From NCBI GenBank assembly GCA_977020255.1, contig CDROCS010000318.1:248001-312000 (forward strand): DNA of 64,000 nt, written 5' to 3'. The notes beneath the pieces were generated by a model that was not told where the DNA came from, ran no database searches, and saw only the letters and a list, made by a program, of their open reading frames with translations. The position numbers and the translations under genes are program-made. This stretch comes from Obrimoposthia wandeli (Eukaryota). This document shows positions 1-59,048 of the stretch, one piece after another (position 1 is the stretch's first letter; each line of letters opens with the position of its first letter).

Positions 1-420
1 ATTTTTTTTTAAAAGTGGAAGCAATTTGAAATGTTTGAACAAAATCCTTTGGAGAAAATTCTGAAATGTTTGAAATAAATTCAGATAAGCATAAAGTCAA
101 TGAGAGTTAATAGCATAATTTTAAGCTCTGTTAGATTCATCAGTAACTTTCTTTTACAGGAATAATACGCTCATGTTCAATTATTGTGGCCATTGTTGTG
201 ATTTTTGAAATGTTTGTTTGTTAATTAACCACTCTGACTAATCAAAGGGTTTCGTCAGTAAATGTGTTTAATTGAAGTACAGACATGTCTGGTTGTCTGA
301 TTTGAAATTGGAATCAGTCAATCGTGTTGATATGTGCGTGTTGTTTTAACCAATTGCACATCGTGATTTGTAACTACACGCTCGTGGTGTACCCGTAAGT
401 GCTATATAATAGCAGTAGGT

Positions 421-659
421 GGAAGGATGGAGTCTAGACCAATTTACCCCCCATACTAAAGGGTGTCACTCCATAAGGATGTCACACCATAAAAGGTGTC
501 TTGCCACACCATAAGGGTATATGTTGCCTCACCTCTGGTGAGGCAACATATACCCTTATGGTGTGGCAAGACACCTTTTATGGTGTGACACCCTTATGGT
601 GTGACACCCTTTAGAGGGAGGGGGATGGGGGGGTAAATTGATCTAGACTCCATCCTTCC
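421..659. repeat. Terminal palindrome/hairpin, left (239 nt)
   Basis: 481-533 and 537-589 form a perfect 53-bp stem with a TCT loop. It extends to 456-614 with 2 mismatches. After a G-rich bulge, 421-451 pairs with ~629-659 (1 mismatch). Confidence 0.92.
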
Positions 660-699
660 TTGATATACTACTATGGTCGTCCATAGTTTAAAGGGTCAA

Positions 700-1075
700 T
701 TGGCTTAGTCTCCACCCTTCTTTTTGAGATATACCACTATGAAAGGGTCAATTGGCTTAGTCTCCACCCTTCTTTTAGTGGTCTAGTCTCCACCCATCTT
801 TTTGTGGTCTAGTCTCCACCCATCTTTTTGTGGTCTAGTCTCCACCCTTCTTTTAGTGATCTAGTCTCCACCCTTCTTTTAGTGATCTAGTCTCCACCCA
901 TCTTTTTGTGGTCTAGTCTCCACCCTTATTTTTGGTTAACCACTAATTCAAAGGATCAAGTGGCTTAGTCTCCACCCATCTCTTGTGGTCTAGTCTCCAC
1001 CCTTATTTTTGGTTAACCACTAATTCAAAGGATCAAGTGGCTTAGTCTCCACCCTTCTTTTTTGTGATCTAGTCC
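700..1075 (+). repeat. 26-bp subterminal repeat (core GTCTCCACCC), 11 copies
   Basis: Core at 708, 760, 786, 812, 838, 864, 890, 916, 968, 993 and 1045. Confidence 0.9.
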
Positions 1076-1596
1076 ATAATGAAAATTTATGATAAAGTTC
1101 ACACTTAACAATTAAGAATATATGACGTAATCATACACACACTATTTTATGTGAAAATCAAGGCTAAAGTTCACTCTTATCAGTTAAGGAATGTGGTTTT
1201 TAACACACACACTATTCTATGTGAAAGTTTAGATCAAATTATTTTCCTAGGTTTTCACATTTATAGAATTATGATAAAATTTCTTTAAATAACTTCAATT
1301 ATATATTAAAATAAAAATAAAATAAGAAAGAAGTCAGAGAATAATACAAAATTAAACACATTTATTATGTAATTTCATAATATCATCTTCAAACTTAAGT
1401 GAATAACATTTACAAAGTAAGAAAGTCCATTCTTTATACATTCTTTTCGTTTCAACGACTAAGTTACAACAGTATTAATAGAAAATTAGTAAAAATATTA
1501 ATTTATTTTGAATATTTGAATGTGAGTTTGAATAAATGAGAGGTAGAATGAATGTAAATGAATAAAATTATGCATGCAAGTATGAATGTCATTTAC

Positions 1597-2546
1597 AAGT
1601 AAGAGGGTTTAGCAAGTGAATGTAATTTTAAAAATAAGAGTGTCGATAGTTTGATTGAATGCAAGTGTAATTTAGACTATAAGTAAATTAAAATAGAGTT
1701 TTTGTTGAATAAATTATAGTTAGATTGAATGCAAGTATGACGAGCAAGTGATTGATAGTTTGAATTTTCAATACAAGTAAGTGGGTTTAGCAAGTGAATG
1801 TAATTTTAAAAAATAAGAGTGTCGATAGTTTGATTGAATGCAAGTGTAATTTAGACTATAAGTAAATTAAAATAGAGTTTTTGTTGAATAAATTATAGTT
1901 AGATTGAATGCAAGTATGACGAGCAAGTGATTGATAGTTTGAATTTTCAATACAAGTAAGTGGGTTTAGCAAGTGAATGTAATTTTAAAAATAAGAGTGT
2001 CGATAGTTTGATTGAATGCAAGTGTAATTTAGACTATAAGTAAATTAAAATAGAGTTTTTGTTGAATAAATTATAGTTAGATTGAATGCAAGTATGACGA
2101 GCAAGTGATTGATAGTTTGAATTTTCAATACAAGTAAGTGGGTTTAGCAAGTGAATGTAATTTTAAAAATAAGAGTGTCGATAGTTTGATTGAATGCAAG
2201 TGTAATTTAGACTATAAGTAAATTAAAATAGAGTTTTTGTTGAATAAATTATAGTTAGATTGAATGCAAGTATGACGAGCAAGTGATTGTTAGTTTGAAT
2301 TTTCAATACAAGTAAGTGGGTTTAGCAAGTGAATGTAATTTTAAAAATAAGAGTGTCGATAGTTTGATTGAATGCAAGTGTAATTTAGACTATAAGTAAA
2401 TTAAAATAGAGTTTTTGTTGAATAAATTATAGTTAGATTGAATGCAAGTATGACGAGCAAGTGATTGATAGTTTGAATTTTCAATACAAGTAAGTGGGTT
2501 TAGCAAGTGAATGTAATTTTAAAAATAAGAGTGTCGATAGTTTGAT
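1597..2546 (+). repeat. 178-bp satellite, 5 full units (left arm)
   Basis: Marker TGTCGATAG at 1641, 1820, 1998, 2176, 2354 and 2532. Confidence 0.95.
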
Positions 2547-2842
2547 TTTTTAAATTACTTGATATTTTTTTTGCCATTGTCCGTTTAATATAATATGAAT
2601 ATTCAATTTATTTCTTCAAAAATTCATTTTATATGTTAAATAATATTCTTTATCACATTATTGTGGTTTTTATCAAGTGATTTTAACCTTAAACTATAAA
2701 AATATTTTAATTATAAAGTTAGTTGCTGTACCCCGCCCACTGCATATAACATAAATTTCAAATATAAAGTACTATTAAGTTATTATTTCGAATAGTAAAT
2801 GTTTTTTCGAGTTATTTAATTTTGTTTACTAGACATTCGAAA

Positions 2843-5800
2843 ATTTACTTGTAAACTACAATATTTATTTGTTGTTGTATATATTTAGTTTAAAATGGTG
2901 TAAGTTATTACTTTAATATAATTTACAACCAAAACTTCAAATAGTTTACTTGTAAACTACAATATTTATTTGTTGTTGTATATATTTAGTTTAAAATGTT
3001 GTAAGTTATTACTTTAATATAATTTTCAACAAAAACTTCAAGTAGTTTACTTATTAAACATAAGTTTAATGTTTTGTACAATAAATTGACTTGTAAACAT
3101 AATTTATTTTGATATATTTTCAATTTAAAATGTTGTAAGTTATTACTTTAATATAATTTACAACAAAAACTTCAAGTAGTTTAAAATGTTACACAATAAA
3201 ATGTTTATTTGTAAGTTATTACTTTAATATAATTTTCAACAAAAAATTCAAGTAGTTTACTTATTAAACATAAGTTTAATGTTTTGTACAATAAATTGAC
3301 TTGTAAACATAATTTATTTTGATATATTTTCAATTTAATATGTTGTAAGTTATTACTTTAATATAATTTACAACAAAAACTTCAAGTAGTTTACTTATTA
3401 AACATAAGTTTAATGTTTTGTACAATAAATTGACTTGTAAACATAATTTATTTTGATATATTTTCAATTTAATATGTTGTAAGTTATTACTTTAATATAA
3501 TTTACAACAAAAACTTCAAGTAATTTACTTGTAAACTACAATATTTATTTGTTGTTGTATATATTTAGTTTAAAATGTTGTAAGTTATTACTTTAATATA
3601 ATTTTCAACAAAAACTTCAAGTAGTTTACTTATTAAACATAAGTTTAATGTTTTGTACAATAAATTGACTTGTAAACATAATTTATTTTGATATATTTTC
3701 AATTTAATATGTTGTAAGTTATTACTTTAATATAATTTACAACAAAAACTTCAAGTAGTTTACTTATTAAACATAAGTTTAATGTTTTGTACAATAAATT
3801 GACTTGTAAACATAATTTATTTTGATATATTTTCAATTTAATATGTTGTAAGTTATTACTTTAATATAATTTACAAAAAAAACTTCAAGTAATTTACTTG
3901 TAAACTACAATATTTATTTGTTGTTGTATATATTTAGTTTAAAATGTTGTAAGTTATTACTTTAATATAATTTTCAACAAAAAAACTTCAAGTAGTTTAC
4001 TTATTAAACATAAGTTTAATGTTTTGTACAATAAATTGACTTGTAAACATAATTTATTTTGATATATTTTCAATTTAATATGTTGTAAGTTATTACTTTA
4101 ATATAATTTACAACAAAAACTTCAAGTAGTTTACTTATTAAACATAAGTTTAATGTTTTGTACAATAAATTGACTTGTAAACATAATTTATTTTGATATA
4201 TTTTCAATTTAATATGTTGTAAGTTATTACTTTAATATAATTTACAACAAAAACTTCAAGTAATTTACTTGTAAACTACAATATTTATTTGTTGTTGTAT
4301 ATATTTAGTTTAAAATGTTGTAAGTTATTACTTTAATATAATTTTCAACAAAAACTTCAAGTAATTTACTTGTAAACTACAATATTTATTTGTTGTTGTA
4401 TATATTTAGTTTAAAATGTTGTAAGTTATTACTTTAATATAATTTTCAACAAAAATTTCAAGTAGTTTACTTATTAAACATAAGTTTAATGTTTGTACAA
4501 TAAATTGACTTGTAAACATAATTTATTTTTGATATATTTTCAATTTAATATGTTGTAAGTTATTACTTTAATATAATTTACAACAAAAACTTCAAGTAGT
4601 TTACTTATTAAACATAAGTTTAATGTTTTGTACAATAAATTGACTTGTAAACATAATTTATTTTGATATATTTTTAATTTAATATGTTGTAAGTTATTAC
4701 TTTAATATAATTTACAACAAAAACTTCAAGTAGTTTACTTATTAAACATAAGTTTAATGTTTTGTACAATAAATTGACTTGTAAACATAATTTATTTTGA
4801 TATATTTTCAATTTAATATGTTGTAAGTTATTACTTTAATATAATTTACAACAAAAACTTCAAGTAATTTACTTGTAAACTACAATATTTATTTGTTGTT
4901 GTATATATTTAGTTTAAAATGTTGTTAGTTATTACTTTAATATAATTTTCAACAAAAACTTCGAGTAGTTTACTTATTAAACATAAGTTTAATGTTTTGT
5001 ACAATAAATTGACTTGTTAACATAATATATTTATGCATATATTAACTTTAATATGTTGTAACTTATTACTTTAATATAATTTTCAACAAAAACTTCAAGT
5101 AGTTTACTTATTAATCATAAGTTTAATGTTTTGTACAATAATTTGACTTGTAAACATAATATATTTATGCATATATTAACTTTAATATGTTGTAACTTAT
5201 TACTTTAATATAATTTTCAACAAAAACTTCAAGTAGTTTACTTATTAATCATAAGTTTAATGTTTTGTACAATAAATTGACTTGTAAACATAATTTATTT
5301 TTGATATATTTTCAATTTAATATGTTGTAAGTTATTACTTTAATATAATTTACAACAAAAACTTCAAGTAGTTTACTTATTAAACATAAGTTTAATGTTT
5401 TGTACAATAAATTGACTTGTAAACATAATTTATTTTGATATATTTTCAATTTAATATGTTGTAAGTTATTACTTTAATATAATTTACAACAAAAACTTCA
5501 AGTAGTTTACTTATTAAACATAAGTTTACTTATTAAACATAAGTTTAATGTTTTGTACAATAAATTGACTTGTAAACATAATTTATTTTGATATATTTTC
5601 AATTTAATATGTTGTAAGTTATTACTTTAATATAATTTACAACAAAAACTTCAAGTAATTTACTTGTAAACTACAATATTTATTTGTTGTTGTATATATT
5701 TAGTTTAAAATGTTGTAAGTTATTACTTTAATATAATTTTCAACAAAAACTTCTAGTAATTTACTTGTAAACTACAATATTTATTTGTTGTTGTATATAT

Positions 5801-8157
5801 TTAGTTTAAAATGTTGTAAGTTATTACTTTAATATAATTTTCAACAAAAATTTCAAGTAGTTTACTTATTAAACATAAGTTTAATGTTTTGTACAATAAA
5901 TTGACTTGTAAACATAATTTATTTTTGATATATTTTCAATTTAATATGTTGTAAGTTATTACTTTAATATAATTTACAACAAAAACTTCAAGTAGTTTAC
6001 TTATTAAACATAAGTTTAATGTTTTGTACAATAAATTGACTTGTAAACATAATTTATTTTGATATATTTTCCATTTAATATGTTGTAAGTTATTACTTTA
6101 ATATAATTTACAACAAAAACTTCAAGTAGTTTACTTATTAAACATAAGTTTAATGTTTTGTACAATAAATTGACTTGTAAACATAATTTATTTTGATATA
6201 TTTTCAATTTAATATGTTGTAAGTTATTACTTTAATATAATTTACAACAAAAACTTCAAGTAATTTACTTGTAAACTACAATATTTATTTGTTGTTGTAT
6301 ATATTTAGTTTAAAATGTTGTTAGTTATTACTTTAATATAATTTTCAACAAAAACTTCGAGTAGTTTACTTATTAAACATAAGTTTAATGTTTTGTACAA
6401 TAAATTGACTTGTTAACATAATATATTTATGCATATATTAACTTTAATATGTTGTAACTTATTACTTTAATATAATTTTCAACAAAAACTTCAAGTAGTT
6501 TACTTATTAATCATAAGTTTAATGTTTTGTACAATAATTTGACTTGTAAACATAATATATTTATGCATATATTAACTTTAATATGTTGTAACTTATTACT
6601 TTAATATAATTTTCAACAAAAAACTTCAAGTAGTTTACTTATTAATCATAAGTTTAATGTTTTGTACAATAAATTGACTTGTAAACATAATTTATTTTTG
6701 ATATATTTTCAATTTAATATGTTGTAAGTTATTACTTTAATATAATTTACAACAAAAACTTCAAGTAGTTTACTTATTAAACATAAGTTTAATGTTTTGT
6801 ACAATAAATTGACTTGTAAACATAATTTATTTTGATATATTTTCAATTTAATATGTTGTAAGTTATTACTTTAATATAATTTACAACAAAAACTTCAAGT
6901 AATTTACTTGTAAACTACAATATTTATTTGTTGTTGTATATATTTATATATATTTAGTTTAAAATGTTGTAAGTTATTACTTTAATATAATTTTCAACAA
7001 AAACTTCAAGTAGTTTACTTATTAAACATAAGTTTAATGTTTTGTACAATAAATTGACTTGTAAACATAATTTATTTTGATATATTTTCAATTTAATATG
7101 TTGTAAGTTATTACTTTAATATAATTTACAACAAAAACTTCAAGTAATTTACTTGTAAACTACAATATTTATTTGTTGTTGTATATATTTAGTTTAAAAT
7201 GTTGTAAGTTATTACTTTAATATAATTTTCAACAAAAACTTCAAGTAGTTTACTTATTAATCATAAGTTTAATGATTTGATCAATAAATTGACTTGTAAA
7301 CATAATATAATTTGCATATTTTCAATTTAACACGTTGTAAGTTATTACTATAATATAACATTACAAAAAAAGTAATTAAACATAAGTTTACTGTTTTGTA
7401 AATAAATGACTTGTAAACATAATATATTTATACATATATTCACTTTAAAATGTTGTAAGTTATTACTTTAATATAATTTTCAACAAAAAAAAAAAAACTT
7501 CAAGTAGTTTACTTATTAAACATAAGTTTAATGTTTTGTACAATAAATTGACTTGTAAACATAATTTATTTTGATATATTTTCAATTTAATATGTTGTAA
7601 GTTATTACTTTAATATAATTTACAACAAAAACTTCAAGTAATTTACTTGTAAACTACAATATTTATTTGTTGTTGTATATATTCAGTTTAAAATGTTGTA
7701 AGTTATTACTTTAATATAATTTTCAACAAAAATTTCAAGTAGTTTACTTATTAATCATAATATTAATGATTGATCAATAAATTGACTTGTAAACATAATA
7801 TAATTTGCATATTTTCAATTTAACACGTTGTAAGTTATTACTATAATATTACATTACATAAAAAAGTAATTGATAGTTTACTATCGTTTACAATAAATTG
7901 ACTTGTAAACATAATATATTTATGCATATATTCACTTTAATATGTTGTAAGTTATTACTTTATTATAATTTTCAACAAAAACTTCAAGTAGTTTACTTAT
8001 TAAACATAAGTTTAATGTTTTGTACAATAAATTGACTTGTAAACATAATTTATTTTGATATATTTTCAATTTAATATGTTGTAAGTTATTACTTTAATAT
8101 AATTTACAACAAAAACTTCAAGTAATTTACTTGTAAACTACAATATTTATTTGTTGT

Positions 8158-8201
<44 letters not shown>

Positions 8202-8243
8202 GTTTAAAATGTTGTAAGTTAATACTTTAATATAATTTACAAA
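2843..8243 (+). repeat. AT-rich composite satellite (134-bp A units and 101-bp B units plus variants; about 40-45 units) with higher-order structure
   Basis: Units share the core ATGTTGTAAGTTATTACTTTAATATAATTT(T/A)CAACAAAAACTTCAAGTA. A: 3371 to 3505 = 134 bp; B: 3505 to 3606 = 101 bp. A (TA)n tract at ~8161-8198 lies in the last unit. Confidence 0.93.
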
Positions 8244-8823
8244 TATCGTAACAACCAAGTTAACTTACCAGATAACTGTGTAGTTAAGGTAATTTATCAT
8301 TTAGTCTGAAACAATGAATACCAAATCGCCTACAATGCATGTGTTGGGGTTTCTATACGAAACTTGGTATAGAGCCTCTTGAATGCGCGGAGGGCCCCAA
8401 CGTGAGTTCGATTAGAAGCAGGTCTTAAAGTTGGTCGTGGCCTACTTAGTGTTATGGTTGCCTAATCTCTTGTGCTATCTGAAGGTATTTGATTTGATGT
8501 CTCTTAGTCTGAAGGGTGTAAAAACAACTTGTTCTAATGTAGGAAATTGTTTATTCGTAATTCACGTAACTAACACAACAATACGTTTATGTACGTATTT
8601 CTAAAAAGTATGATAAAATTCCTAAAGGACTTCTGTAAGTCTCTACAAGAAGTGGGGATGAACCACGTATCGATTTTACGTTCAGGTGATTAAGTTTTTT
8701 AGGTTTAGTCTTCTTACTCAGGTTGGTTAATCTATAACGCAACTCTCTTAAATTTCTTCGCTCCTACTTCTTATCTCTAGATAATGTTTCTTGGTTCCTT
8801 AACTCTATCTGTGTGTGTTTGAC

Positions 8824-9258
8824 CCGAATTGTCTACTGTAAACAATGGGTCTCCTAAAAACCTAATTGTCAAGATGACAATGAAAACTTACTCCTAATTG
8901 TCAACTACGGACAATGAACGAACCGAATTGTCAGCTAGGGACAATGAGTCTTACCGAATTGTCTACTAGGGACAATGAGTATTTATCCGAATTGTCAACT
9001 AGGGACAATGAATGAACCTAATTGTCAGCTAGGGACAATGAATCTTACGGTAAAAAGTCTGGGTATGATTCCTAATTGTCGCTGGGGACAATGAATAAAT
9101 GTCAGATCTTAATTACCAACTAGGGGCAATGATTTTGTTAAAGAGTCGGATTGTCCTAATTGCCAGCTAGGGGCAATGAATTTGTGTATTAGTTTAAAAT
9201 GTAGAATTACCAACAAGGGGTAATGACAGTATCCTAATTGCCAACTAGGGGCAATGAA
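8824..9258. repeat. Array of 12 spaced palindromic motifs CC(G/T)AATTGTC-N7-GACAATGA with variable spacers
   Basis: Left arms start at 8828, 8865, 8897, 8927, 8958, 8991, 9021, 9075, 9112, 9159, 9206 and 9237. The loop is mostly 7 nt (A(A/G)CTAGG). Confidence 0.9.
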
Positions 9259-9471
9259 TAGTCTAGTTGGTGTTCTTACCAGTTACGGCAACTAGTGGGA
9301 CGTCCGATGCAGATCCGTAGGTTTTCCGGAATCCTCTTCGAAACAGAGATTGTCCCTTGCGTGAGGCTTGAGTACACGCTTGACCTGACCTTTGGATACT
9401 GGACAATTATTTTTTATTCAGATACTGAACAACTATTCTTTATTTACCTCGAATGCACTTCGGCTTGGTTT

Positions 9472-9774
9472 TTCTGGACACGTGGCCTTTTGGATAACAA
9501 TTATTGGACACTTGGCTTTTGGATAACGATTATTGGACACTTGGCTTTTTGGATAACGATTATTGGACACTTGGCTTTTCGGTTAACGATTATTGGACAC
9601 TGGGCTTTTCGGTTAACGATTATTGGACACTTGGCTTTTTGGTTAACGATTATTGGACACTTGGCTTTTTGGTTAACGATTATTGGACACTTGGCTTTTT
9701 GGTTAACGATTATTGGACACTTGGCTTTTTGGTTAACGATTATTGGACACTTGGCTTTTTGGTTAACGATTATT
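9472..9774 (+). repeat. 30-bp tandem repeat (TATTGGACACTTGGCTTTTTGGTTAACGAT), about 10 copies
   Basis: TATTGGACAC at 9502, 9531, 9561, 9591, 9621, 9651, 9681, 9711 and 9741, plus a degenerate copy near 9472. Confidence 0.95.
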
Positions 9775-9837
9775 CAATTTATCTAAAAACAAATTAATAC
9801 GGTCCAAAACCACCAAAAATTTACCGTTGTTCTCCGC

Positions 9838-10006
9838 CTAGTTGATTGCTCGTCCAGTTGATTGCTCGTAGTATTTTTATTTGTGACTTGTTGCTCTTTG
9901 GTTCTCCTTATATAAAGGCACTGTACGTCAATCAATTGACGGCTGCTTGACGATTTGGTTCGGCGATATCGGAGAGGCAAAATGGAATGTCAATCAATTG
10001 ACAGCT
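9838..10006. promoter_or_regulatory. Putative promoter or control region of the element
   Basis: Contains AGTTGATTGCTCG twice, a TATA-like TATATAAAG near 9909, and the palindrome GTCAATCAATTGAC twice (~9927, ~9990). Function is inferred only. Confidence 0.3.
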
Positions 10007-10957
10007 GGAATTGAAATTAGTCTATTGCACGAAAAAGTGCTTACCTTCTTGAATCCTTGATTGACGTGTTTAATTAACCGTTTTTTCTTAATTACTTCTA
10101 AATTGTCCCTTTTGGGTTAATTAATTTAACTTTTATACATTTTCGCATAATACACGACCTTCGTGGTCCTCCTAATTTTTACCCTAAATTCCACTAATTT
10201 TAATTCTAAAACTAAAATTAATATTTTAATCTAATTTTCAACCTTGCTTTCAAGGATTTTTATTTTAGTATTTAATCGACTAAAATATTTAATTTTCTTA
10301 ATTCTCAACCTTAACACATGTATAATTTAATTGTCAACTACAGTAAACTATAATTACTCTTTGTGTACAGTAATAATTTCCAATATATTAAAGTAAACAT
10401 TTACAAAATATAATCTGTTTACAAGTCAATTTATCATACAAATCCTTAAATTATGATTAATAAGTAAACTACTTGAAGTTTATTGTTGTAAATATATTAT
10501 GTTTACAAGTCAATTTATCGTACAAATCATTAATATTATGATTATTAAGTAAACTATTTGAAGTTTTGGTTGTAAATTATATTAAAGTAATAACTTACAA
10601 CATTTTAAACTAAATATATACAACAACAAATAAATATTGTAGTTTACAAGTAAATTTTCGAATGTCTAGTAAACAAAATTAAATAACTCGAAAAAACATT
10701 TACTATTCGAAATAATAAACTTAATAGTACTTTATATTTGAAATTTATGTTATATGCAGTGGGCGGGGTACAGCAACTAACTTTATAATTAAAATATTTT
10801 TATAGTTTAAGGTTAAAATCACTTGATAAAAACCACAATAATGTGATAAAGAATATTATTTAACATATAAAATGAATTTTTGAAGAAATAAATTGAATAT
10901 TCATATTATATTAAACGGGCAATGGCAAAAAAAAAATCAAGTAATTTAAAAAAAAAT

Positions 10958-13150
10958 CAAACTATCGACACTCTTATTTTTTAAAATTACATTCACTTGC
11001 TAAACCCACTTACTTGTATTGAAAATTCAAACTAACAATCACTTGCTCGTCATACTTGCATTCAATCTAACTATAATTTATTCAACAAAAACTCTATTTT
11101 AATTTACTTATAGTCTAAATTACACTTGCATTCAATCAAACTATCGACACTCTTATTTTTAAAATTACATTCACTTGCTAAACCCACTTACTTGTATTGA
11201 AATTCAAACTATCAATCACTTGCTCGTCATACTTGCATTCAATCTAACTATAATTTATTCAACAAAAACTCTATTTTAATTTACTTATAGTCTAAATTAC
11301 ACTTGCATTCAATCAAACTATCGACACTCTTATTTTTAAAATTACATTCACTTGCTAAACCCACTTACTTGTATTGAAAATTCAAACTATCTATCACTTG
11401 CTCGTCATACTTGCATTCAATCTAACTATAATTTATTCAACAAAAACTCTATTTTAATTTACTTATAGTCTAAATTACACTTGCATTCAATCAAACTATC
11501 GACACTCTTATTTTTAAAATTACATTCACTTGCTAAACCCACTTACTTGTATTGAAAATTCAAACTATCAATCACTTGCTCGTCATACTTGCATTCAATC
11601 TAACTATAATTTATTCAACAAAAACTCTATTTTAATTTACTTATAGTCTAAATTACACTTGCATTCAATCAAACTATCGACACTCTTATTTTTAAAATTA
11701 CATTCACTTGCTAAACCCACTTACTTGTATTGAAAATTCAAACTATCAATCACTTGCTCGTCATACTTGCATTCAATCTAACTATAATTTATTCAACAAA
11801 ACTCTATTTTAATTTACTTATAGTCTAAATTACACTTGCATTCAATCAAACTATCGACACTCTTATTTTTAAAATTACATTCACTTGCTAAACCCACTTA
11901 CTTGTATTGAAAATTCAAACTATCAATCACTTGCTCGTCATACTTGCATTCAATCTAACTATAATTTATTCAACAAAAACTCTATTTTAATTTACTTATA
12001 GTCTAAATTACACTTGCATTCAATCAAACTATCGACACTCTTATTTTTAAAATTACATTCACTTGCTAAACCCACTTACTTGTATTGAAAATTCAAACTA
12101 TCAATCACTTGCTCGTCATACTTGCATTCAATCTAACTATAATTTATTCAACAAAACTCTATTTTAATTTACTTATAGTCTAAATTACACTTGCATTCAA
12201 TCAAACTATCGACACTCTTATTTTTAAAATTACATTCACTTGCTAAACCCACTTACTTGTATTGAAAATTCAAACTATCAATCACTTGCTCGTCATACTT
12301 GCATTCAATCTAACTATAATTTATTCAACAAAAACTCTATTTTAATTTACTTATAGTCTAAATTACACTTGCATTCAATCAAACTATCGACACTCTTATT
12401 TTTAAAATTACATTCACTTGCTAAACCCACTTACTTGTATTGAAAATTCAAACTATCAATCACTTGCTCGTCATACTTGCATTCAATCTAACTATAATTT
12501 ATTCAACAAAACCTCTATTTTAATTTACTTATAGTCTAAATTACACTTGCATTCAATCAAACTATCGACACTCTTATTTTTAAAATTACATTCACTTGCT
12601 AAACCCACTTACTTGTATTGAAAATTCAAACTATCAATCACTTGCTCGTCATACTTGCATTCAATCTAACTATAATTTATTCAACAAAACTCTATTTTAA
12701 TTTACTTATAGTCTAAATTACACTTGCATTCAATCAAACTATCGACACTCTTATTTTTAAAATTACATTCACTTGCTAAACCCACTTACTTGTATTGAAA
12801 ATTCAAACTATCAATCACTTGCTCGTCATACTTGCATTCAATCTAACTATAATTTATTCAACAAAAACTCTATTTTAATTTACTTATAGTCTAAATTACA
12901 CTTGCATTCAATCAAACTATCGACACTCTTATTTTTTAAAATTACATTCACTTGCTAAACCCACTTACTTGTATTGAAAATTCAAACTATCAATCACTTG
13001 CTCGTCATACTTGCATTCAATCTAACTATAATTTATTCAACAAAAACTCTATTTTAATTTACTTATAGTCTAAATTACACTTGCATTCAATCAAACTATC
13101 GACACTCTTATTTTTAAAATTACATTCACTTGCTAAACCCTCTTACTTGT
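10958..13150 (-). repeat. 178-bp satellite, 12 full units (right arm)
   Basis: Marker CGACACT occurs 13 times from 10966 to 13100, spaced 177-179 bp. Confidence 0.95.
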
Positions 13151-13669
13151 AAATGACATTCATACTTGCATGCATAATTTTATTCATTTACATTCATTCT
13201 ACCTCTCATTTATTCAAACTCACATTCAAATATTCAAAATAAATTAATATTTTTACTAATTTTCTATTAATACCGTTGTAACATAGTCGTTGAAACGAAA
13301 AGAATGTATAAAGAATGGACTTTCTTACTTTGTAAATGTTATTCACTTAAGTTTGAAGATGATATTATGAAATTACATAATAAATGTGTTTAATTTTGTA
13401 TTATTCTCTGACTTCTTTCTTATTTTATTTTTATTTTAATATATAATTGAAGTTATTTAAAGAAATTTTATCATAATTCTATAAATGTGAAAACCTAGGA
13501 AAATAATTAGATCTAAACTTTCACATAGAATAGTGTGTGTGTTAAAAACCACATTCCTTAACTGATAAGAGTGAACTTTAGCCTTGATTTTCACATAAAA
13601 TAGTGTGTGTATGATTACGTCATATATTCTTAATTGTTAAGTGTGAACTTTATCATAAATTTTCATTAT

Positions 13670-14020
13670 GGACTAGATCACAAAAAAGAAGGGTGGAGAC
13701 TAAGCCACTTGATCCTTTGAATTAGTGGTTAACCAAAAATAAGGGTGGAGACTAGACCACAAGAGATGGGTGGAGACTAAGCCACTTGATCCTTTGAATT
13801 AGTGGTTAACCAAAAATAAGGGTGGAGACTAGACCACAAAAAGATGGGTGGAGACTAGATCACTAAAAGAAGGGTGGAGACTAGATCACTAAAAGAAGGG
13901 TGGAGACTAGACCACAAAAAGATGGGTGGAGACTAGACCACAAAAAGAAGGGTGGAGACTAAGCCAATTGACCCTTTCATAGTGGTATATCTCAAAAAGA
14001 AGGGTGGAGACTAAGCCAAT
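13670..14020 (-). repeat. 26-bp subterminal repeat (GGGTGGAGAC), 10 copies
   Basis: Core at 13691, 13743, 13768, 13820, 13846, 13872, 13898, 13924, 13950 and 14002. Confidence 0.9.
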
Positions 14021-14059
14021 TGACCCTTTAAACTATGGACGACCATAGTAGTATATCAA

Positions 14060-14299
14060 GGAAGGATGGAGTCTAGATCAATTTACCCCCCCCCATCCCC
14101 CTCCCTCTAAAGGGTGTCACACCATAAGGGTGTCACACCATAAAAGGTGTCTTGCCACACCATAAGGGTATATGTTGCCTCACCAGAGGTGAGGCAACAT
14201 ATACCCTTATGGTGTGGCAAGACACCTTTTATGGTGTGACATCCTTATGGAGTGACACCCTTTAGGGGGGGGGTAAATTGGTCTAGACTCCATCCTTCC
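14060..14299. repeat. Terminal palindrome/hairpin, right (240 nt)
   Basis: Mirror copy of 421-659, centred on CCTCACC-AGA-GGTGAGG. Confidence 0.92.
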
Positions 14300-15038
14300 A
14301 CCTACTAATAGCCCGACGATTGTTGTAATTGTTTTTCTGTATGTGCATGTAAAAAGGAAAATATGATGAAAATTCTGACTGCGATGGTGAGTGTGAGGAT
14401 TGTAATAAACAAAGAGCTGAGGTGATAAATCTGAAATTTTGGATAAGTAGAGAAACAATGAAAAGGTCAGTTTAAGTGGTGATGAAATTAGTGTAATGCA
14501 CGTTTATTTTGAAAACAAAGTTGATGATCAAGTTATCTTTATTTCATGGTTATTGTGTTATAATGCTACTCATGTTCCCGAAAAACTTTATCTTTATGTG
14601 TGAATAATTTGTGCATCACGTCGACCACGAAGTTAACAGTGTTCAATTGTATGTATTTGGTATTGACAACTTAAAATGATTCTAATTATGACGATCTTTG
14701 AAAGGTTATTCTTAATTTTTATCATTAATTAAACATACTATGTGAATTTATTGGATAGTGGTACTTAGAAATTAAAACATAATTTGGCAGATAAAATATA
14801 GTTACCTCTATAGCAGAAGTGTCCAGACGTTTTCAGGCGCGAGTAAAATCAATGATTCTCTTAATCTTTAAGTCAAAAACTTCTTCAAAAAATCGAAAAT
14901 GATTATTTTTGGATCTTTTCAGTTTTTATAATAAACAAATAAAATTCATAAATTTTCTAATATTATCAGATTTCAGTTAAAATTTGTCCAAAAATACATC
15001 CACTGTTATATTTTACCTTACTTTACCTTACTCCAAAG

Positions 15039-16186: not shown

Positions 16187-17576
16187 CTAGAAAACAATTA
16201 ATTCCAATAAAATTTGTTTTAGAGTTTAAGGGATTTTGACATTCAGATTCAAGTGAACGTCTTAAAACTTTGTTTGGAATTCACTGTACGTTCATTTCTA
16301 TAATCATCAACGTATAAGCCTCCTACTTACATTTAAAATTATTAACGGTGAACTATAGGTGAAACATAGGATAATGTAAGCTTAAATTGTCATGGGGATA
16401 TTGAAAAAGATATTATATACGAATTCCTAGTGGACCATGTTTGATACGCAGAACTGACGACCTAGAGAACGGGAATATCTGAGTGAGCAGTAATAAATAT
16501 CGTATCTATCCAAATCGATATTCACATCATGTTTATTAGATGATAATTCTACAAACTTAGTAACAATATAGATAAGGGAAGACGGAAAATTACATTTGTA
16601 CTTATGAAATAAAAGAAGAAAAGATTCGGATGATATAAATTTTCTTAATAGAATTCAAAATTTTCAATTCAATTTTAATAAATTCAATAATAAATTCTTT
16701 CATATTTTTATCAAAAATTTTATAAAGAATCTCATTTAATTTTGTAGAAATTACGTTTGTAAAATATGTTAAGCGATAAAGATTGTTAACTTATTTCAAT
16801 TTTATAAGAAAAATATTAATATGTTATTTGTTTAATTTGTTTGAACCTTCTAAAATTACACATAAAGTTTAATATGAATTCCATTAAAGATTATTTTAGA
16901 AAATACTTTTTTTATTGACTATATTTATTCATTTATTTAAATGATAAAGTTAATCTAGTTTTTTGTTTCTAAGTTATATACATTTAATTAATTATAACTA
17001 TTTCAAAAGAATCAGTATTAGCTATATTTTATAATTTTTTTTGTATAGTACATTTAAAATTTATCTGTAATATATTATTGAATAAATATATTGAAATTAA
17101 TCATATGCATTATTATTTAAATTAGTAATAATTAAAAAGACTGTTTTGTAATATATTTACAATAATTTCTAAAGTTATTTGCAATATTATTTTAATATAA
17201 CAAATTATAGAAAATAATATTTAAAACTGTACATTTATAACTTTTAACTTAATACAGATAGGTCGTTAAAAACTATACAGAATTATTTTAATTAATCATT
17301 TTGTTGCTTGATTTTTTAATAATTTTTGTCCAATTTGATTTGTGACCGAAAATGTATGAAATTTGTTGATACATATAACAACGGTTAGAATATACTAATA
17401 AAAACATGTCGCAAATAGTTCACGAGTGTATTGTGTCGACAAACTTTGACTCGTGTATGAAATGGGTTAAATAAGCGACACTGTCCATTGGTTCGCAGAT
17501 CAATCTGACATTATTGCACCAGGTTGAAAGTTATCGACGGTAAACGGGGCAACTACAATGAGATTTTTCCACTTAC

Positions 17577-17773
17577 GATTATCCATGTTACGGCAGAAAT
17601 CGCGATAAGAAACAAATCCATCCGGTCGTCGATAATAATTGGCCAGTTTCTGAATCTCGCCTCGGGCCAATCCGGACTCCCGGCCAATGGCCATGCTCAG
17701 GGCACACACAAATTGGTTCTCAGTGACTGAGTCATGTCTGAGTTTGTCATGATCCACAAAGAAATCCATGATC
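17577..17773 (-). CDS. EF-hand-like repeat protein, exon 5
   Basis: Encodes (R)IMDFFVDHDKLRHDSVTENQFVCAL...DGFVSYRDFCRNMDN; GTAAGT donor, phase 1. Repeats the D-x-D-K-L-R-x-x-x-V-T-x-x-Q-F motif of exons 1-2. Confidence 0.85.
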
Positions 17774-18822
17774 CTGCGTGAGCATTGTTAAATTATAAAT
17801 TGGTTTTAAGGCTTCGATTTGATGTAAATTGAATATTTTCGAAACCAATAATATGTCTTATTTTAGATAAGCTTTTTAAATGTGTTAAAATATTAAATCT
17901 CTTAAATGATAATGAAAAACGTTTGGTACTGGAAGGATTAGAATTCCTTTCAAATTTACAGTAATTAAAAAGTTGTTGAATAAAACAAAGAAAAAGTGTA
18001 TTGGATCAACGTACACTAGCAAGGGAAAATTTTGAAAGTGTAATACTGTTAAATTGACGAGATTAAAATCCTTGATATATATAAGAGAAAAAGTAATAAA
18101 AAAGTTATGAATTTAGTTTTAAGTCAAACATTTCAAATTATTTGTTTATCTAAACGAAAGTTATTTAAAATTTTGTTTAAACATAAAATAAACTATTTTG
18201 AAAGTTATAATATTTTTTAATAATATAAACTTTAGTTTCAGTTATTTGAAAAATAGTATAACTTATTTATTAGAATAACCTATATACACAGTTACAGAAA
18301 ATAATTATTTCGAAACAAGTTTCGTTTCAATTTTTGTTAATTTCAGAGCATTAAAATAAAATTTGATTGTTTATTTCCAAATTTCTTCATTTTTCATGGT
18401 ATTTAGCAGATGAATGATAAAAATGATATCTTATAAATATTTACTTTTATTTAAAATTGATAAACTTAATATTCAGAAATGCCCAGTTGCGATTATTTCC
18501 TTGTTAAAAAATGCAAAACGGGCTTCAAAGTCAAAATCTATAATATTGAAATTAAAAACATTGTAAAAATTTAGATTTGAATTTAAGTTACAAATAAATT
18601 AAACTGTAAGGATATGTAATTATAAATTGAAGAGTATAACTAAAATAAGAAAATGCTTTTCAAATCGAAAAATAATAATAACAGAGGCCTAAATTTCATC
18701 CATATTAGACTTTTAAATTAAGCTTCAATGCAGTAGAATTGAAAACTATGTAAACTTGAGGTAAAGACGTAGACTATATAGGGAACAAGCAACTGCTTCG
18801 TCCAAACCTGCAACCATGAGTA

Positions 18823-20612
18823 CACCTATTGTAACTTAGTAAGTTATACTAAGTCAATTAGTAAGTTAGAATCACTTAAACGTGATTAGATCATTTAATT
18901 ACCAATGTAATTGCAAATGATTTAAGTGGTTTTAACTTATTTGTAGTTTAACTTATTTAACAGTTTAATGTTATTTTATACACTTTAACTGTTTTTAAAC
19001 TTTAAATTTTACAGTTAAACGTGATTTTATTATATAATTTATATTTATTATAATTATATAATGATTTAACTGTTTTTTGGATATAAAGTTTAAAAAGGAA
19101 TGAAGAAAAAATAAATAGAAATGTTATATTTATAATACATAGTTATAAAATGGATTCTTTCTTCATGTATCGCGGAAAGAATTTTTTTATGTGACTGTAA
19201 TGAGAAGTTACATCTTGGTTTGAGGAATCAATCAGTACGCCAGCGATACTTTCGCGGATTTTAAATATTTTTTCCTCCGATGAAGCTTGCAGCATACCAG
19301 CAGTCCGCGTAAGTTTCTTCCTCACATCACTTTTCACTTTAGAAAAAACCGTTTCAATAGGGTTTAAAAGGGACTGTAAGGGGGTAAATTTACAATTTTG
19401 TGGAGTGATGAGGTGGTGAGTGTCCGATTGTGGATACTGGCGTTGTCATGGATAAGATAATGTTGGGTATCTGGTAATCGTAGAGACAGATCTGCTACGA
19501 AAGCTTGATAAAGTAAATGGGTAAACGATCCTGCTACAACTTCAGAATGTACAGGACCCTGTTTTGAAATTGCCATGACGAGGCTTAGTGATCGGGATCG
19601 AGCTGGGACGGTATGGTATATACGAAGTCCCCGTCGAGATCGACCCATTCTTTGTCTTGTCCAGACATTTATAGACGTTTCATCTATATAGATGCATTCT
19701 TTGGACTTCCAACCTTCTTCCATCAATTTTGTTACGTATTCGCAACGCAAATCTTTTACGGCATCTGAGTTTTGCCAACTACAGAGTACCTTATTTTCTT
19801 CCGGGTGACAAGTTGACCTTTTAAAAAATTAGCGATTGTTTTCATGCTGGGACTAATATTGTGATTTTCTGCCACGAACATATTAATCTCATTTAAAGTA
19901 GCTGTGTTGTTGGCGTCCAGAAAACATAAAATTGCTTCACCGATAGTTTCGGTTATTAATTTGTGCCGATAACCTCCAACATGTCCAGTTGACAGAACTT
20001 CATTCTTATTGTACCTTTTAGAATAATAATTTTAAAAATTCAAATGAAATACCTGGACACTAAATTGTATATGGACCCCGAACACTGGTAGCCCAACATC
20101 TTAGCTAATGATACATAATCATGTCCTTCATGATAACATTTTATGATTCTTTCCTTATCTATACGAGAAATTCTATAAAAAATAAAGATATGTTAAATGT
20201 TAAAAAACAAACTTTTGTCGAGATTTAAGTGGTGTAGGCTGACTAGGTCCATCCAAATCATTAAATCGGAAAGGAAATGTACGCTCAGACTCTACACTCG
20301 ATATATTTGAAAGGTTTTCATACATTTTTAATATACCTAATCTAACTTAGTAAGTTCTTTTTAACTTAGTAAGTTGCTATCAAATTGTGCCTCTCGGTGG
20401 GTTTTGATTGGATTGTTATTATTTTCAAATCCACGTATGTATGTGGTATTTTATTTTTACCTGTATTTTAATCTAATAACCTATTTTTAATTTAGTAACT
20501 TGGCCAGAAACTCAGTTGTACCCAATTCAGGCTATGTGATTCTATTCAAATATCAAATGCAGGTATTAATTTAGTAACTTATCTAATTTAATTTACTAAT
20601 TTACAATAGGCG
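18823..20612 (-). mobile_element. IS630/Tc1-superfamily DNA transposon (~1.8 kb) in intron 4 of the EF-hand gene
   Basis: Imperfect TIRs CCTATTGTAA(C/A)TTAGTAA at 18825 and 20610; TA on the left flank only; subterminal TTAGTAAGTT repeats; internal DDE transposase. Confidence 0.8.
19143..20000 (-). pseudogene. Frameshifted Tc1/IS630-like DDE transposase
   Basis: Motifs IYIDET, LIHDNASIH and LPPYSPF-(L)NPIE. There is a 1-nt loss in a T-run near 19366 and another frameshift near 19780. Confidence 0.85.
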
Positions 20613-20786
20613 TCGTAGATTTGACAATCAATGTTGGAATTGAGAAAGTGAAAACAAACAGAACAGAAAAGGATACTTTTGTAAAATAAATTATCATTAG
20701 TTACTCTCTACTTGTAGTTTGGAGTGAGTACACGGATAACGCATCTGACTACAGGTCGAAAGAAGCCCACAATACCAAAGCCCAAC

Positions 20787-21070
20787 CTGATACCGCGCTT
20801 GTGGACAGTGAAGCGGATTCTGTCCTCGATCATCTGCACCGATGGACTGTCACACCGTTCTTGGGGCAGCATTCTGGCCGCTCGAGCTGTATCCTCGGTG
20901 GTGTTGAGCACCGCCATCTGTTGTAGCCTGATGTCTTCTATGGCCACAAGGTCGTTGTGCAGATTCAGGTAGTTGATCATTGTTGGATTCTCAGGGTGTC
21001 TGTATTTGCGAACTAGCAGAGTTAGTTCTGTGTCAGTGATGTCCTTGGGACCCGGAAATCCGCGGTAGAA
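20787..21070 (-). CDS. EF-hand-like repeat protein, exon 4
   Basis: TTTCTGCAG acceptor; encodes FYRGFPGPKDITDTELTLLVRKY...INYLNLHND...IEDRIRFTVHKRGI(R); GTTGGG donor, phase 2. Confidence 0.82.
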
Positions 21071-21369
21071 CTGCAGAAATAGGAATTTCCAGTGCGGAGT
21101 TTGAAGATACGGGAGAAAATTGAATTTTTAGTCATTTAATCAATCGCGTGAAAGAATTTATCGATGGAAAATATTTGTGTATTTCATAAATTGTAATTGA
21201 AATAAAGGTAAACTAGGTATACAATATTGTATGCAACTACATGTACTATATGTACTAAGAGAATAAATACTTTTATTGTTTAGTTAAGCATTTACATTTA
21301 TCTTCATAAGATAATTATAATAGAAAGAGATAGAAGGATATATAAAGGAGATAAATCCAAAAAACGAAC

Positions 21370-21535
21370 CTGTGTTTCAGTGATGAGCCCGATGTTATGG
21401 ACGTCAAAGTCCCGATAGGAATTGCGGATTGTGAATCCCTGGTATTCGTAGAATTGATTGAGTCGCTGTAGTATTGGCAACAGTCGAGCCTCAGATTCAG
21501 GTGAGAGTGGTCGTACAGAACGTACTTGACCAAGG
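21370..21535 (-). CDS. EF-hand-like repeat protein, exon 3
   Basis: CAG acceptor; encodes (Y)LGQVRSVRPLSPE...RNSYRDFDVHNIGLITETQ; GTTCGT donor, phase 0. Confidence 0.85.
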
Positions 21536-22294
21536 CTGTGTTTGAGAGAACGAATAAATATGGTCAAAACCTTTACAAAACTTTCATTATTTACCAAAAT
21601 GTCCACTGAAAGTATATCAACTCAACATAAGCCTAACGAATGTGAGTTAAATCGAAATAAGTAGCTTGCGTATACAAATAAAAAACTTGCAAAAATAATT
21701 AATTAGTTCTTTTAAATCAACTTAAATGGGTTCATCACCCAAGACGTTATTAAAGAGGCAAAAATGCTAAATTTCTGTTCATGTCGATTTTTAGTTGAAA
21801 TATCTCCGAACCTTTGCAGTCTATCTAAATGAAACTTGATAGGTGCAGTCAAAACATTTCCTACCTTTCCAAATTTATGTGCGTTGGGTGTGTGAAAGAG
21901 CCCGCTAAAAATAGGAATTTCAATATTGTGTAGGTAGATGGTTGAAATACTAGTTTTTCCCGTCTTGGGTTGAAATATCTCCCGAAGTCAAGGAAACTTT
22001 GCAGACGTAACTTAGACATCAATTGCCATTTCCGTAGGAAATTGTAGTCAAATGTAATACTTAAATATTAGGGAAATGAACATTCTTTTAATCTCGTCAG
22101 GAAAAAAGACTTTAAAAGTTTGGTTTAAATCATCGTTTAATAGCAGCAAAACTCGCTTATATATTCAAAAGTAATTTATTTGTCAGTGTGTAATATTTTC
22201 TACATATTAATTATTTTGTAGAATCGTTTCTATGAAACAACATAGAGCATCAATAATTATATCAAAGATTGCTAAAACATTCCTTCACACTTAC

Positions 22295-22490
22295 TATTCC
22301 GGAGTGTTCTTTATCTGATCAGCAGGATTAATGTGCATCAAATGAGGATCGAATTTCCCATCAACTTCTTCACAGAATCTGCGCCAATTCATCTTCTGTC
22401 CGTCACTATACCGACCCACTAATTCCTGCTCCTCTTGTTCAGAAAATTTCACACCCATATTCTGCCACAATATTCTAAAAAATTGGTTGT
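22295..22490 (-). CDS. EF-hand-like repeat protein, exon 2
   Basis: Follows a 45-nt intron; encodes NNQFFRILWQNMGVKF...MNWRRFCEEVDGKF...KNTPE; GTAAGT donor, phase 2. Confidence 0.85.
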
Positions 22491-22535
22491 CTTTTTTAAA
22501 ATAATTTTTAAACATTTGATAGAAAAAATATGTAC

Positions 22536-22668
22536 TTGTAACAAATCCAGATCGCAATTTATCAAAATCCAAAAAATATTCATTGATTCTGATACTTTTT
22601 ACATCACATGTTTCTTTTAACTTACCTTCAATATTAAATTGAGAAGTTGGTGCAACACAAGCTGACAT
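22536..22668 (-). CDS. EF-hand-like repeat protein, exon 1
   Basis: ATG at 22668; encodes MSACVAPT...IRINEYFLDFDKLRSGFVT; GTACAT donor, phase 1. Confidence 0.8.
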
Positions 22669-23349
22669 TTGAAGTTATTAAAGTTTAAAGATTACTGTTA
22701 AATTTAACTTTAAATTAATTCCTTATTCTCGTTCTTATAGTTACTGAGTATTAAAACAATAACAGTGAATCTCGAAATTCAAATGTTTTCAAAATCAATT
22801 TCAAATATTAAATTTTGCAATTTTAAAAAATATATATAAAACTATAAATAGCAACAACAATGAAAGTATTTGATTAATTTAAGTTGATAATTTTTTTTAT
22901 AAAAGTTTATTAGTTTACCATTATTTTACTTTCGTCAAAATTACAGAATTGTTTAGCAGAGTTGGAACCGGCCATTAAACCCACCCCCGGCCGATATTGG
23001 CCGGTAAATAAAATATTAATTTATGAAAGCTTTTATATTTTTTCAATATTTTAGAAAGCATCTTTATGTGAGAGCACTTGTATTCAATCTTTGATTTAAA
23101 AAATTAATATTAATTTCGTTGACATTTTTGCTTTTTATTAATCTGTTCGTAAGAAAGACTCTAGTTCGAGAGTTCTCAACAGTATATGACTGGTATGTAT
23201 ATGAGTGAGGCAAAAAGGTCAAGTTGGTCATAAAGTTTGACAAGGATTAAAGTCTAATTTAGGATTACCGACCCCATCTTTGATACGACGTAATGAAATT
23301 AGTGTAATTTCTTCTTTTTTTTTTGAACATATCTTTACTGCTTGGTACA

Positions 23350-23760
23350 GCCCCTATCGACCTATCGACAACATCAAGTTTTTGAATATCAAAATATCTG
23401 ACAATAACAGCCAAAATCTGTGCTACTGTGATATCTGTACATTTATCTATTAGCATCGAAAATTGATTAGTTTTGCAAATATTAGAAATGTTTAATTTTT
23501 TGTGATAGGATAAGCCTTCTTGTATAATATTAAAAAAACTTTGATAGCCTTCATATTTACCTGTTTTACAATTTGACTATCATGGAATACTTTCTTACAT
23601 GCTTTCACAAGGTGATCACATACTGCAAAGGGCAAATTGTGTTCAGAAATGAAAGTCTCAATTATTAATTCTGCCTTTCCTGTTATTTCACTATCCGTTG
23701 GTTTACATGTGTTGGGAATGGAGAAGAGGTGTATTTATATTTTTGGGATAGTTAAATTTA
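23350..23760 (-). pseudogene. hAT transposase fragment
   Basis: Reads ...FISEHNLPFAVCDHL... then FSMLIDKCTDITVAQILAVIVRYFD, resembling the hAT IIDESTD...LAVxIRYFD segment. Confidence 0.6.
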
Positions 23761-44318: not shown

Positions 44319-44463
44319 GCGTTTTCAGTGGCCGAGAAAGAGTTCAGTATCCCGGCCTTGCTGGACGCCAGAGATATGGTGATCATGAAGAGCCCCGACC
44401 GACTTAGCATCATTACTTATCTCTTCCAGTACATCAGTATTCTTTCACACAATAATTCTCCAA
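44319..44463 (+). CDS. MICAL-like protein, exon 3: end of CH domain
   Basis: Encodes [39 protein letters not shown], the typical C-terminal half of the EHBP1/MICAL CH domain. Confidence 0.88.
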
Positions 44464-58829: not shown

Positions 58830-59048
58830 CTACGCTTTCTCGCTCATAACGTTTTCCAGCTGTGGTATTATTCCTAAAGATTTTGCGACCAAAGCTTCTT
58901 GATGTAAAGTACAATGAAAAGGAATAATTTCATGATAAATTTGACAGGAGAACAATTTACGAAATCCTTTGTTTTTTACAATCTTAGCTGGTGCTCCATC
59001 TGTTGCCATGGATACTATTTGTTCGATGTTTATGTTTTTATTTCTCAA
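58830..59048 (-). pseudogene. hAT (GTF2IRD2/SPIN-like) transposase fragment
   Basis: SMATDGAPAKIVKNKGF...FHCTLHQEALVAK is the hAT TDGA / CxxH segment. Confidence 0.75.

Follow-up and report, generated by a model that had tools for sequence, protein, structure and literature searches.

Which enzyme inserts a large foldback element that carries no genes of its own? The question is raised by a stretch of 64,000 nucleotides from Obrimoposthia wandeli (assembly GCA_977020255.1, contig CDROCS010000318.1, forward-strand positions 248,001 to 312,000). This whole stretch, in which all positions below are counted, is called the window; it is AT-rich metazoan DNA with a GC content of about 29%. An element of 13,893 bp occupies positions 414-14306 and lies between two exact copies of the hexamer AATAGC (408-413 and 14307-14312), which form a target-site duplication (TSD) of 6 bp. 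We conclude that it is very probably a real insertion of a mobile, non-autonomous DNA transposon of the foldback type, and from the length of the TSD and the sequence of the ends we tentatively suggest a helper of the Polinton/Maverick type. The furthest-reaching possibility, to which we give a probability of roughly 0.18, is that the element is a gene-less copy-back satellite of a Polinton/Maverick, for which a helper would provide replication, integration and perhaps packaging in trans and which would owe its near-helper length to satellite DNA.

Insertion site and terminal modules

The element begins with 5'-AGTAGG and ends with CCTACT-3', a perfect inverted pair. A first-pass annotation, made from the letters alone, had reported the exact AATAGC duplication together with AGTAG...CTACT termini, and both were found as described. 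With the junctions fixed by the inverted ends, a random pair of hexamers from the window is identical with P = 8.7e-4, and the single-copy flanks to the left and right of the element are unrelated to each other. The two flanks have 7 bp (TAATAGC) in common; as reading all seven as the TSD makes the ends of the element unequal by one base, 6 bp is the symmetrical solution. Other boundaries were tried and rejected: an 8-bp TSD of the hAT type fails at the observed boundaries, moving the start to TA for a TA..TA boundary of the IS3EU type destroys the TSD, and a shift to a CAG start breaks the symmetry of the ends.

Each end of the element is itself a palindrome of 259 bp. The left one (414-672) consists of a 7-nt tail, AGTAGGT, followed by a near-perfect hairpin (421-658) and an inner edge, ACTACT (667-672). 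The right one (14048-14306) contains a hairpin at 14060-14299 and ends with ACCTACT; its inner edge AGTAGT occupies 14047-14052, the first base of which lies one position outside the palindrome. The hairpins are thus about 238-240 nt long at each end, and folding of the palindromes as DNA gives a free energy (dG) of -125.7 kcal/mol (z -26.9) on the left and of -133.7 kcal/mol (z -25.5) on the right. Rfam returned nothing at gathering thresholds, the terminal hairpin obtaining only weak miRNA-like scores at E-value thresholds.

In detail, each palindrome is made up of two copies of the end, of about 125-131 bp, joined tail to tail. When the two arms of the left palindrome are aligned, they agree at 110 positions, with 4 mismatches and 4 gaps, and the second arm, read from the inner edge, consists of AGTAGT, 7 extra bases and then the GGAAGG... 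sequence of the outer arm. Imperfect forms of a small palindrome, GGTGTSACACC, stand in the outer arms of the left and of the right end alike. The inner edge is a perfect ACTACT/AGTAGT in both palindromes, and each end of the element therefore forms a complete two-ended module, AGTAGG...ACTACT. Inspection of the flanking sequence at both ends revealed no TSD belonging to the modules themselves. The two arms within one module diverge more from each other than the left end of the element does from the right end, from which it follows that the terminal module is older than the event or process that equalised the long arms.

Next to the palindromes lie arrays of a 12-nt motif. The 64-kb window contains 21 copies of the 12-mer TAGTCTCCACCC and four of its variant TAGACTCCATCC, and all 25 copies are found within about 650 bp of an end of the element (13 on the left, 12 on the right), with none elsewhere in the window. 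All copies have the same orientation relative to the element end, except that the outermost one is inverted. The left array (673-1074, plus strand) holds 11 same-direction copies of TAGTCTCCACCC (706-1054) in tandem units of 26 and 77 bp, and two copies of TAGACTCCATCC inside the left terminal hairpin bring the total at this end to 13. The right array (13671-14047, minus strand) holds 10 same-direction copies of TAGTCTCCACCC (13691-14013). All features that could act in cis in mobility, namely the AGTAG termini, the 259-bp palindrome and 10-11 motif copies, are concentrated in the outer 650 bp or so of each arm. The remainder of the element, two satellites and a unique core of 2.1 kb, is cargo.

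Arms, satellites and core

The terminal modules are the outer parts of much longer inverted arms, for which the first-pass annotation had given 2.5 and 3.8 kb and near-identity. Our measurements agree with this, as the left arm is about 2.4-2.7 kb and the right arm about 3.65-3.9 kb long, and every unique arm segment is 99.3-100% identical between the two sides out to 2850/10650. Positions 414-452 match 14306-14268 in 39/39 positions, and the following stretches of the left arm match the right arm in 171/173 (454-626), 144/144 (627-770) and 914/917 positions (797-1713), which covers the outer 1.3 kb. Over the roughly 1.6 kb compared altogether, only 7 substitutions were counted. The inverted symmetry decays within the AT-rich satellite and stops at about 3150/10366.

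Both arms are built from the same parts. Inside the motif array follows a unique, AT-rich segment without an open reading frame (ORF), which lies at 1075-1593 on the left and at 13152-13670 on the right (491/494 positions identical between the left segment and 13645-13152). It is followed by a satellite with a unit of 178 bp, which is present in 5.4 copies on the left (1594-2547; 99% matches between copies) and in 12.4 copies on the right (10955-13151). This difference in copy number, together with one extra 26-bp unit, accounts for the unequal lengths of the arms. A second unique segment (2548-2843; 300/302 positions identical to 10954-10650) completes the left arm before the AT-rich satellite. 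Its counterpart at 10655-10954 forms, with an inverted piece of the AT-rich satellite (10366-10654), the inner part of the right arm (10366-10954).

The AT-rich satellite (2844-8242, GC content 17%) is composed of units of 101, 134, 235 and 369 bp. Its length on the left is about 5.4 kb, and the right side mirrors no more than the first 300 bp or so (about 0.3 kb, at 10366-10654). A perfect (TA)19.5 microsatellite (8160-8198) lies within its last 80 bp or so, adjoining the unique core, and may be a point of recombination or slippage. Altogether, tandem repeats make up about 70% of the element.

The unique, non-coding core (8243-10365, plus strand, about 2.1 kb, GC content 36%) is dense in small palindromes and direct repeats. 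Ten small palindromes follow each other in a row (8896-9256, plus strand), with half-sites of 6 bp and a spacer of 7 nt (6 nt in one unit). Their half-sites covary (GTC/GAC, GCC/GGC, ACC/GGT): in the nine units that were aligned, 53 of 54 cells pair, and two of the six pairs vary on both sides. This pattern could reflect a hairpin or cruciform, binding sites for a dimer, or a mutational process that corrects palindromes. Further on lie ten copies of a 30-bp tandem repeat (9475-9774, plus strand) and a promoter-like stretch (9840-10002, plus strand) with two 14-bp direct repeats (9840-9869) and, near 9909, a TATA-like sequence, TATATAAAGG; the 14-bp palindrome GTCAATCAATTGAC is present there twice (9927-9940 and 9989-10002). 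A promoter function can only be inferred from these motifs.

The only ORF of at least 100 aa in the element (9295-9786) is read through the 30-bp repeat, as the earlier annotation had said of all longer reading frames here, and no homologue of it was found among 5.8 billion proteins. Neither pPolB nor an RVE integrase is encoded by the element, judged from the list of ORFs and from Pfam at threshold. In the core, ten ORFs gave no Pfam match at the curated threshold, only sub-threshold ones, and no Rfam family was found there. One of these, a hydrophobic ORF of 57 aa (8431-8604, plus strand), matches Herpes_glycop (glycoprotein M) with a score of 20.3 bits (E 2.9e-4) where the cut-off is 25, which is most likely a match of composition. 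The proposal that the element is non-autonomous and keeps only cis elements is hence borne out insofar as it is a gene-less, TSD-flanked foldback, which can be moved only by proteins acting in trans.

Candidate helpers and rival explanations

The clues to the mobilising enzyme are the length of the TSD and the sequence of the ends only. Dada elements, which produce TSDs of 6-7 bp, insert into small-RNA genes; they were rejected, as no Rfam family or tRNA is found at or near the insertion site, and a scan of the window found no tRNA genes. TSDs are 8-11 bp long in Mutator-like elements (MULEs) and 9 bp in Rehavkus (PMC6446971), and 8-10 bp in Tetris (PMC4079207). The foldbacks related to MuDR (FB, Tetris and Rehavkus) require 8-11 bp and were rejected at the 6 bp, or at most 7 bp, seen here. 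The P superfamily produces TSDs of 7-8 bp, 7 bp in the case of Galileo (PMC3573991), and was rejected as well, since the 7-bp TAATAGC match makes the ends unequal by one base. IS3EU/GingerRoot elements do have 6-bp TSDs, with ends TA..TA or rarely TG..CA (PMC10045372); the length fits but the AG..CT ends do not, and they were excluded. Finally, 6-bp TSDs are found in the hAT6 group of animals (PMC12730594).

Vertebrate Mavericks combine TSDs of 6 bp with the ends 5'-(AGT)2//(ACT)2-3' or (AG)3//(CT)3, the former being the commonest end motif and the one paired with 6-bp TSDs (PMC8097293). The first-pass annotation goes too far in stating that AG...CT ends and a 6-bp TSD define Polintons, as IS3EU/GingerRoot and hAT6 also make TSDs of this length. 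Among the described classes, a 6-bp TSD together with AG...CT ends of the (AGT)2 or (AG)3 type is nevertheless combined only in Polinton/Maverick, which is thus the best fit, and a helper of this type appears possible, if tentative. At their inner edges the terminal palindromes carry the (AGT)2 motif of vertebrate Mavericks without a mismatch (AGTAGT/ACTACT), the survey behind this motif being one of vertebrates. Intact vertebrate Mavericks are 12.7-24.6 kb long and have terminal inverted repeats (TIRs) of 46-1,447 bp (PMC8097293), and with 13.9 kb the element falls within this span of lengths. In addition, expansion of inverted repeats has been reported in Polintons (PMC3573991). As a Polinton by definition encodes pPolB and an RVE integrase (PMC5499653), the element is at most a non-autonomous Polinton derivative and not a Polinton proper.

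Several observations weigh against a Polinton/Maverick origin. The outer end AGTAGG fits (AGT)2 at 5 of 6 positions, and the end motifs were surveyed in vertebrates, whereas this host looks like an invertebrate. The arms of 2.4-3.9 kb exceed the TIRs of intact Mavericks. All well-studied foldbacks are of the cut-and-paste type, with polar subterminal repeats as the classic layout for transposase binding (PMC4079207, PMC12581902), and a group of animal hATs with 6-bp TSDs exists (PMC12730594). Only one copy of the element was seen: no helper, Polinton gene or second copy was found in the window, in viral, metagenome and prokaryote contigs or in protein searches. In detail, no part of the element is repeated in the 50 kb of the window that lie outside it, and no Polinton genes were seen among the window ORFs of at least 68 aa. 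The terminal 25-mer, the core palindrome, the 30-bp unit and the 26-bp subterminal unit had no matches in viral contigs, and the terminal 20-mer had none in metagenome contigs and prokaryote genome contigs. The subterminal motif gave one metagenome match, which lacks the repeats and was judged to be due to chance. ORFs of the element and of the surrounding host DNA, when looked up by exact match, gave no result. With no other copy or helper found, the link to Polintons rests on one insertion. Of the parasite of a Polinton that the earlier annotation had proposed, the insertion signature therefore stands, as a 6-bp TSD with AG...CT ends matches the published one, whereas no helper or Polinton gene was found to go with it and the element encodes neither pPolB nor integrase.

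The element was presumably inserted by an enzyme provided in trans, which would cut the target with a stagger of 6 bp and join the AGTAG ends to it; the best-fitting known enzyme for this step is the RVE integrase of a Polinton/Maverick. With less certainty, the architecture may be seen as nested, an end of about 125 bp being folded on itself and this unit lying inside arms of 2.4 kb that are folded round a unique loop. More speculatively, such a shape might arise by template switching during end-initiated strand-displacement replication, as in copy-back molecules, and panhandle pairing of the inverted ends might then keep the arms near-identical. Panhandle pairing and the restoring of homology between inverted terminal repeats have been proposed for protein-primed replicons (PMC11886824). 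The polar subterminal array might, again speculatively, be a signal for loading a protein in replication or packaging. In adenovirus, packaging signals are repeated and polar and lie near one end of the genome. By analogy with cut-and-paste foldbacks, the array can equally be read as a set of transposase-binding sites, and sequence alone does not decide between these functions. Replication or packaging in trans is, on balance, unlikely.

The alternative that survives best is an ordinary cut-and-paste foldback, the helper of which would be a DDE transposase producing 6-bp TSDs, either a hAT of the hAT6 type or a member of an undescribed lineage. The 12-nt repeats would then be transposase sites and the growth of satellites in the arms would parallel that in Tetris, Rehavkus and Galileo, with neither replication nor packaging involved. 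We regard this as a real possibility, although we would stop short of calling it probable. The layout matches Tetris domain by domain, and the foldback form arose independently in several superfamilies (PMC4079207), for example in Galileo of the P superfamily (PMC3573991). Rehavkus termini carry satellites, and extra terminal repeats are reported to aid the binding of transposase (PMC12581902). The 6-bp TSDs of hAT6 animal elements (PMC12730594) and the polar motif array, limited to the ends, point in the same direction, while the 6 bp observed here lie outside the published TSDs of MULE, Rehavkus, Tetris and Galileo given above. An apparently intact hAT only 14 kb from the element suggests recent hAT activity in this genome; this neighbour, however, has other ends (CAGTGGTGG...) and an 8-bp TSD. 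The ends of hATs as a whole normally follow the pattern YARNG, in which the second base is A and the fifth is G. AGTAGG/CCTACT does not conform to this general pattern, and a CAG... start can be obtained only by the boundary shift that breaks the symmetry of the ends.

A composite origin, in which 259-bp palindromic modules resembling MITEs (miniature inverted-repeat transposable elements) bracket palindromic, satellite-rich host DNA and the outer ends moved the whole block once, is improbable. It is suggested by the complete two-ended module AGTAGG...ACTACT at each end, and large segments are known to move between foldback pairs in Drosophila (PMC6431247). On the other hand, the symmetry continues for 2.2 kb past the modules at 99.3-100% identity, which is not expected of randomly bracketed host DNA, and no separate TSD flanks either module. 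This explanation also leaves the helper unnamed and is hence compatible with a Polinton and with a cut-and-paste enzyme alike. That the locus is not mobile, and is instead a palindromic duplication made in place or a fold-back artefact of the assembly with a coincidental 6-bp repeat, is highly improbable: although satellite-rich, near-perfect long palindromes are typical trouble spots for assemblers and only one copy was observed, the inverted ends are perfect and each is adjoined by one copy of an exact 6-bp repeat (P = 8.7e-4), the unique flanks are unrelated, and the two arms have different numbers of repeat copies and are set apart by 7 substitutions, unlike those of a simple fold-back artefact.

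The satellite-carrying foldbacks described so far belong to cut-and-paste superfamilies, for example Mutator and P. If the helper is indeed a Polinton/Maverick, a foldback with the Maverick insertion signature would extend this architecture to a self-synthesising, virus-like class of elements. Maverick virions have never been observed (PMC8097293), and a family of dependants without proteins would offer a descriptive handle on them, as the lengths of the copies, the conservation of their ends and their distribution would reveal whether they are constrained by replication or packaging. A satellite of a Polinton would, if real, constitute indirect evidence that animal Mavericks have a virus-like cycle acting in trans, and would give satellite DNA a further way of spreading. 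If the helper is an ordinary transposase instead, the element would be one more large foldback and a source of palindrome-driven instability and of dispersed satellite DNA.

Genomic surroundings and comparison with known systems

The hAT mentioned above (28593-31475) is a complete transposon of 2,883 bp with 16-bp inverted ends starting with CAGTGGTGG and an exact 8-bp TSD, GAAATATT. It contains an intact ORF (29390-31363) for a KIAA1586/Charlie-like transposase of 657 aa, the best relative of which is 65% identical and which has relatives across many animal groups, and it looks recently active. Other traces of transposons are a Tc1/mariner remnant with a DDE_3 domain (19146-20031, minus strand), which is split over three frames, and a pogo/Tc5-type transposase remnant (40532-41000, plus strand) with HTH_Tnp_Tc5 and a weak DDE_1 match. 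In addition, two ORF pieces (23268-23734 and 58833-59078, minus strand) resemble hAT/DUF4371 by eye and have no Pfam support at E <= 0.01.

Two host genes were recognised. Exons of an EF-hand-repeat gene (17503-22674, minus strand; weak EF-hand_7 match) surround the Tc1/mariner remnant, and the foldback element lies about 3 kb past the last recognised exon of this gene. A MICAL-like gene on the plus strand is represented by a CH exon (44265-44483) and a large LIM/NPF exon (51309-52562). Among 1.84 billion representatives, the best relative of the MICAL-like exon searched is on a Logan contig (SRR33002330), with 38% identity, and its 8 matches include a MICAL-like 1 cluster of Schistosoma; a word-indexed search gave no match for this exon. 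With relatives as distant as these, the host species appears to be absent from the databases searched, and it may be a spiralian.

Foldback elements are characterised by long inverted arms with tandem repeats inside them and, in many cases, by a lack of coding capacity, and the element has all of these traits. The closest likeness in layout is found with Tetris of Drosophila virilis, which has no ORFs and arms made of a terminal, a tandem-repeat and an inner domain around a non-coding middle (PMC4079207). The tandem-repeat unit is about 220 bp in Tetris and 178 bp here, and the terminal domain that Tetris has in common with the MITE DAIBAM has its counterpart in the 259-bp terminal module. Satellite DNA is carried in the arms by the present element, by Tetris, which has also seeded a satellite (PMC4079207), and by the Rehavkus foldbacks of Tribolium (PMC12581902). 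Galileo likewise has long, internally repetitive TIRs, dynamic arms and many copies that consist of two TIRs without a transposase (PMC3573991). A gene-less, palindromic and satellite-laden element is thus of an already known kind, and the carriage and seeding of satellites by foldbacks, documented for Tetris and Rehavkus, is not new. The differences lie in the insertion signature: Tetris, assigned to Mutator, has a TSD of 8-10 bp, Rehavkus one of 9 bp and Galileo one of 7 bp with a P-type transposase and ends, whereas the element has 6 bp and AG...CT ends. With 13.9 kb it also exceeds Tetris, FB and Rehavkus in size, and it differs from them in that a perfect hairpin forms each end.

IS3EU/GingerRoot and hAT6 resemble the element in their 6-bp TSDs, the TA..TA/TG..CA ends of IS3EU being absent from it. 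Neither of the two is known for foldback giants. Outside the transposons, the defective genomes of protein-primed viruses of the copy-back or long-inverted-repeat type, such as those in incomplete particles of adenovirus, have an inverted duplication of one end round a unique loop. They keep the ends and the repeated subterminal signals and lose the genes; they are free viral molecules and not integrated with TSDs, and their likeness to the element is an analogy only. Tlr1 and the transpovirons, which are reduced relatives of Polintons and Polinton-like viruses, are linear, with inverted terminal repeats, a reduced set of Polinton genes and dependence on other elements (PMC5499653), but have kept genes for several proteins (helicase, integrase or capsid), whereas the element encodes none. 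Polintons and Mavericks themselves, here compared by their published signatures (TSD, ends and length), differ from it by their genes for pPolB and RVE integrase, to which those for capsid, protease and ATPase are usually added, and resemble it in the 6-bp TSD, the AG.../...CT ends with reiteration of AGT, the inverted terminal repeats and the overall length.

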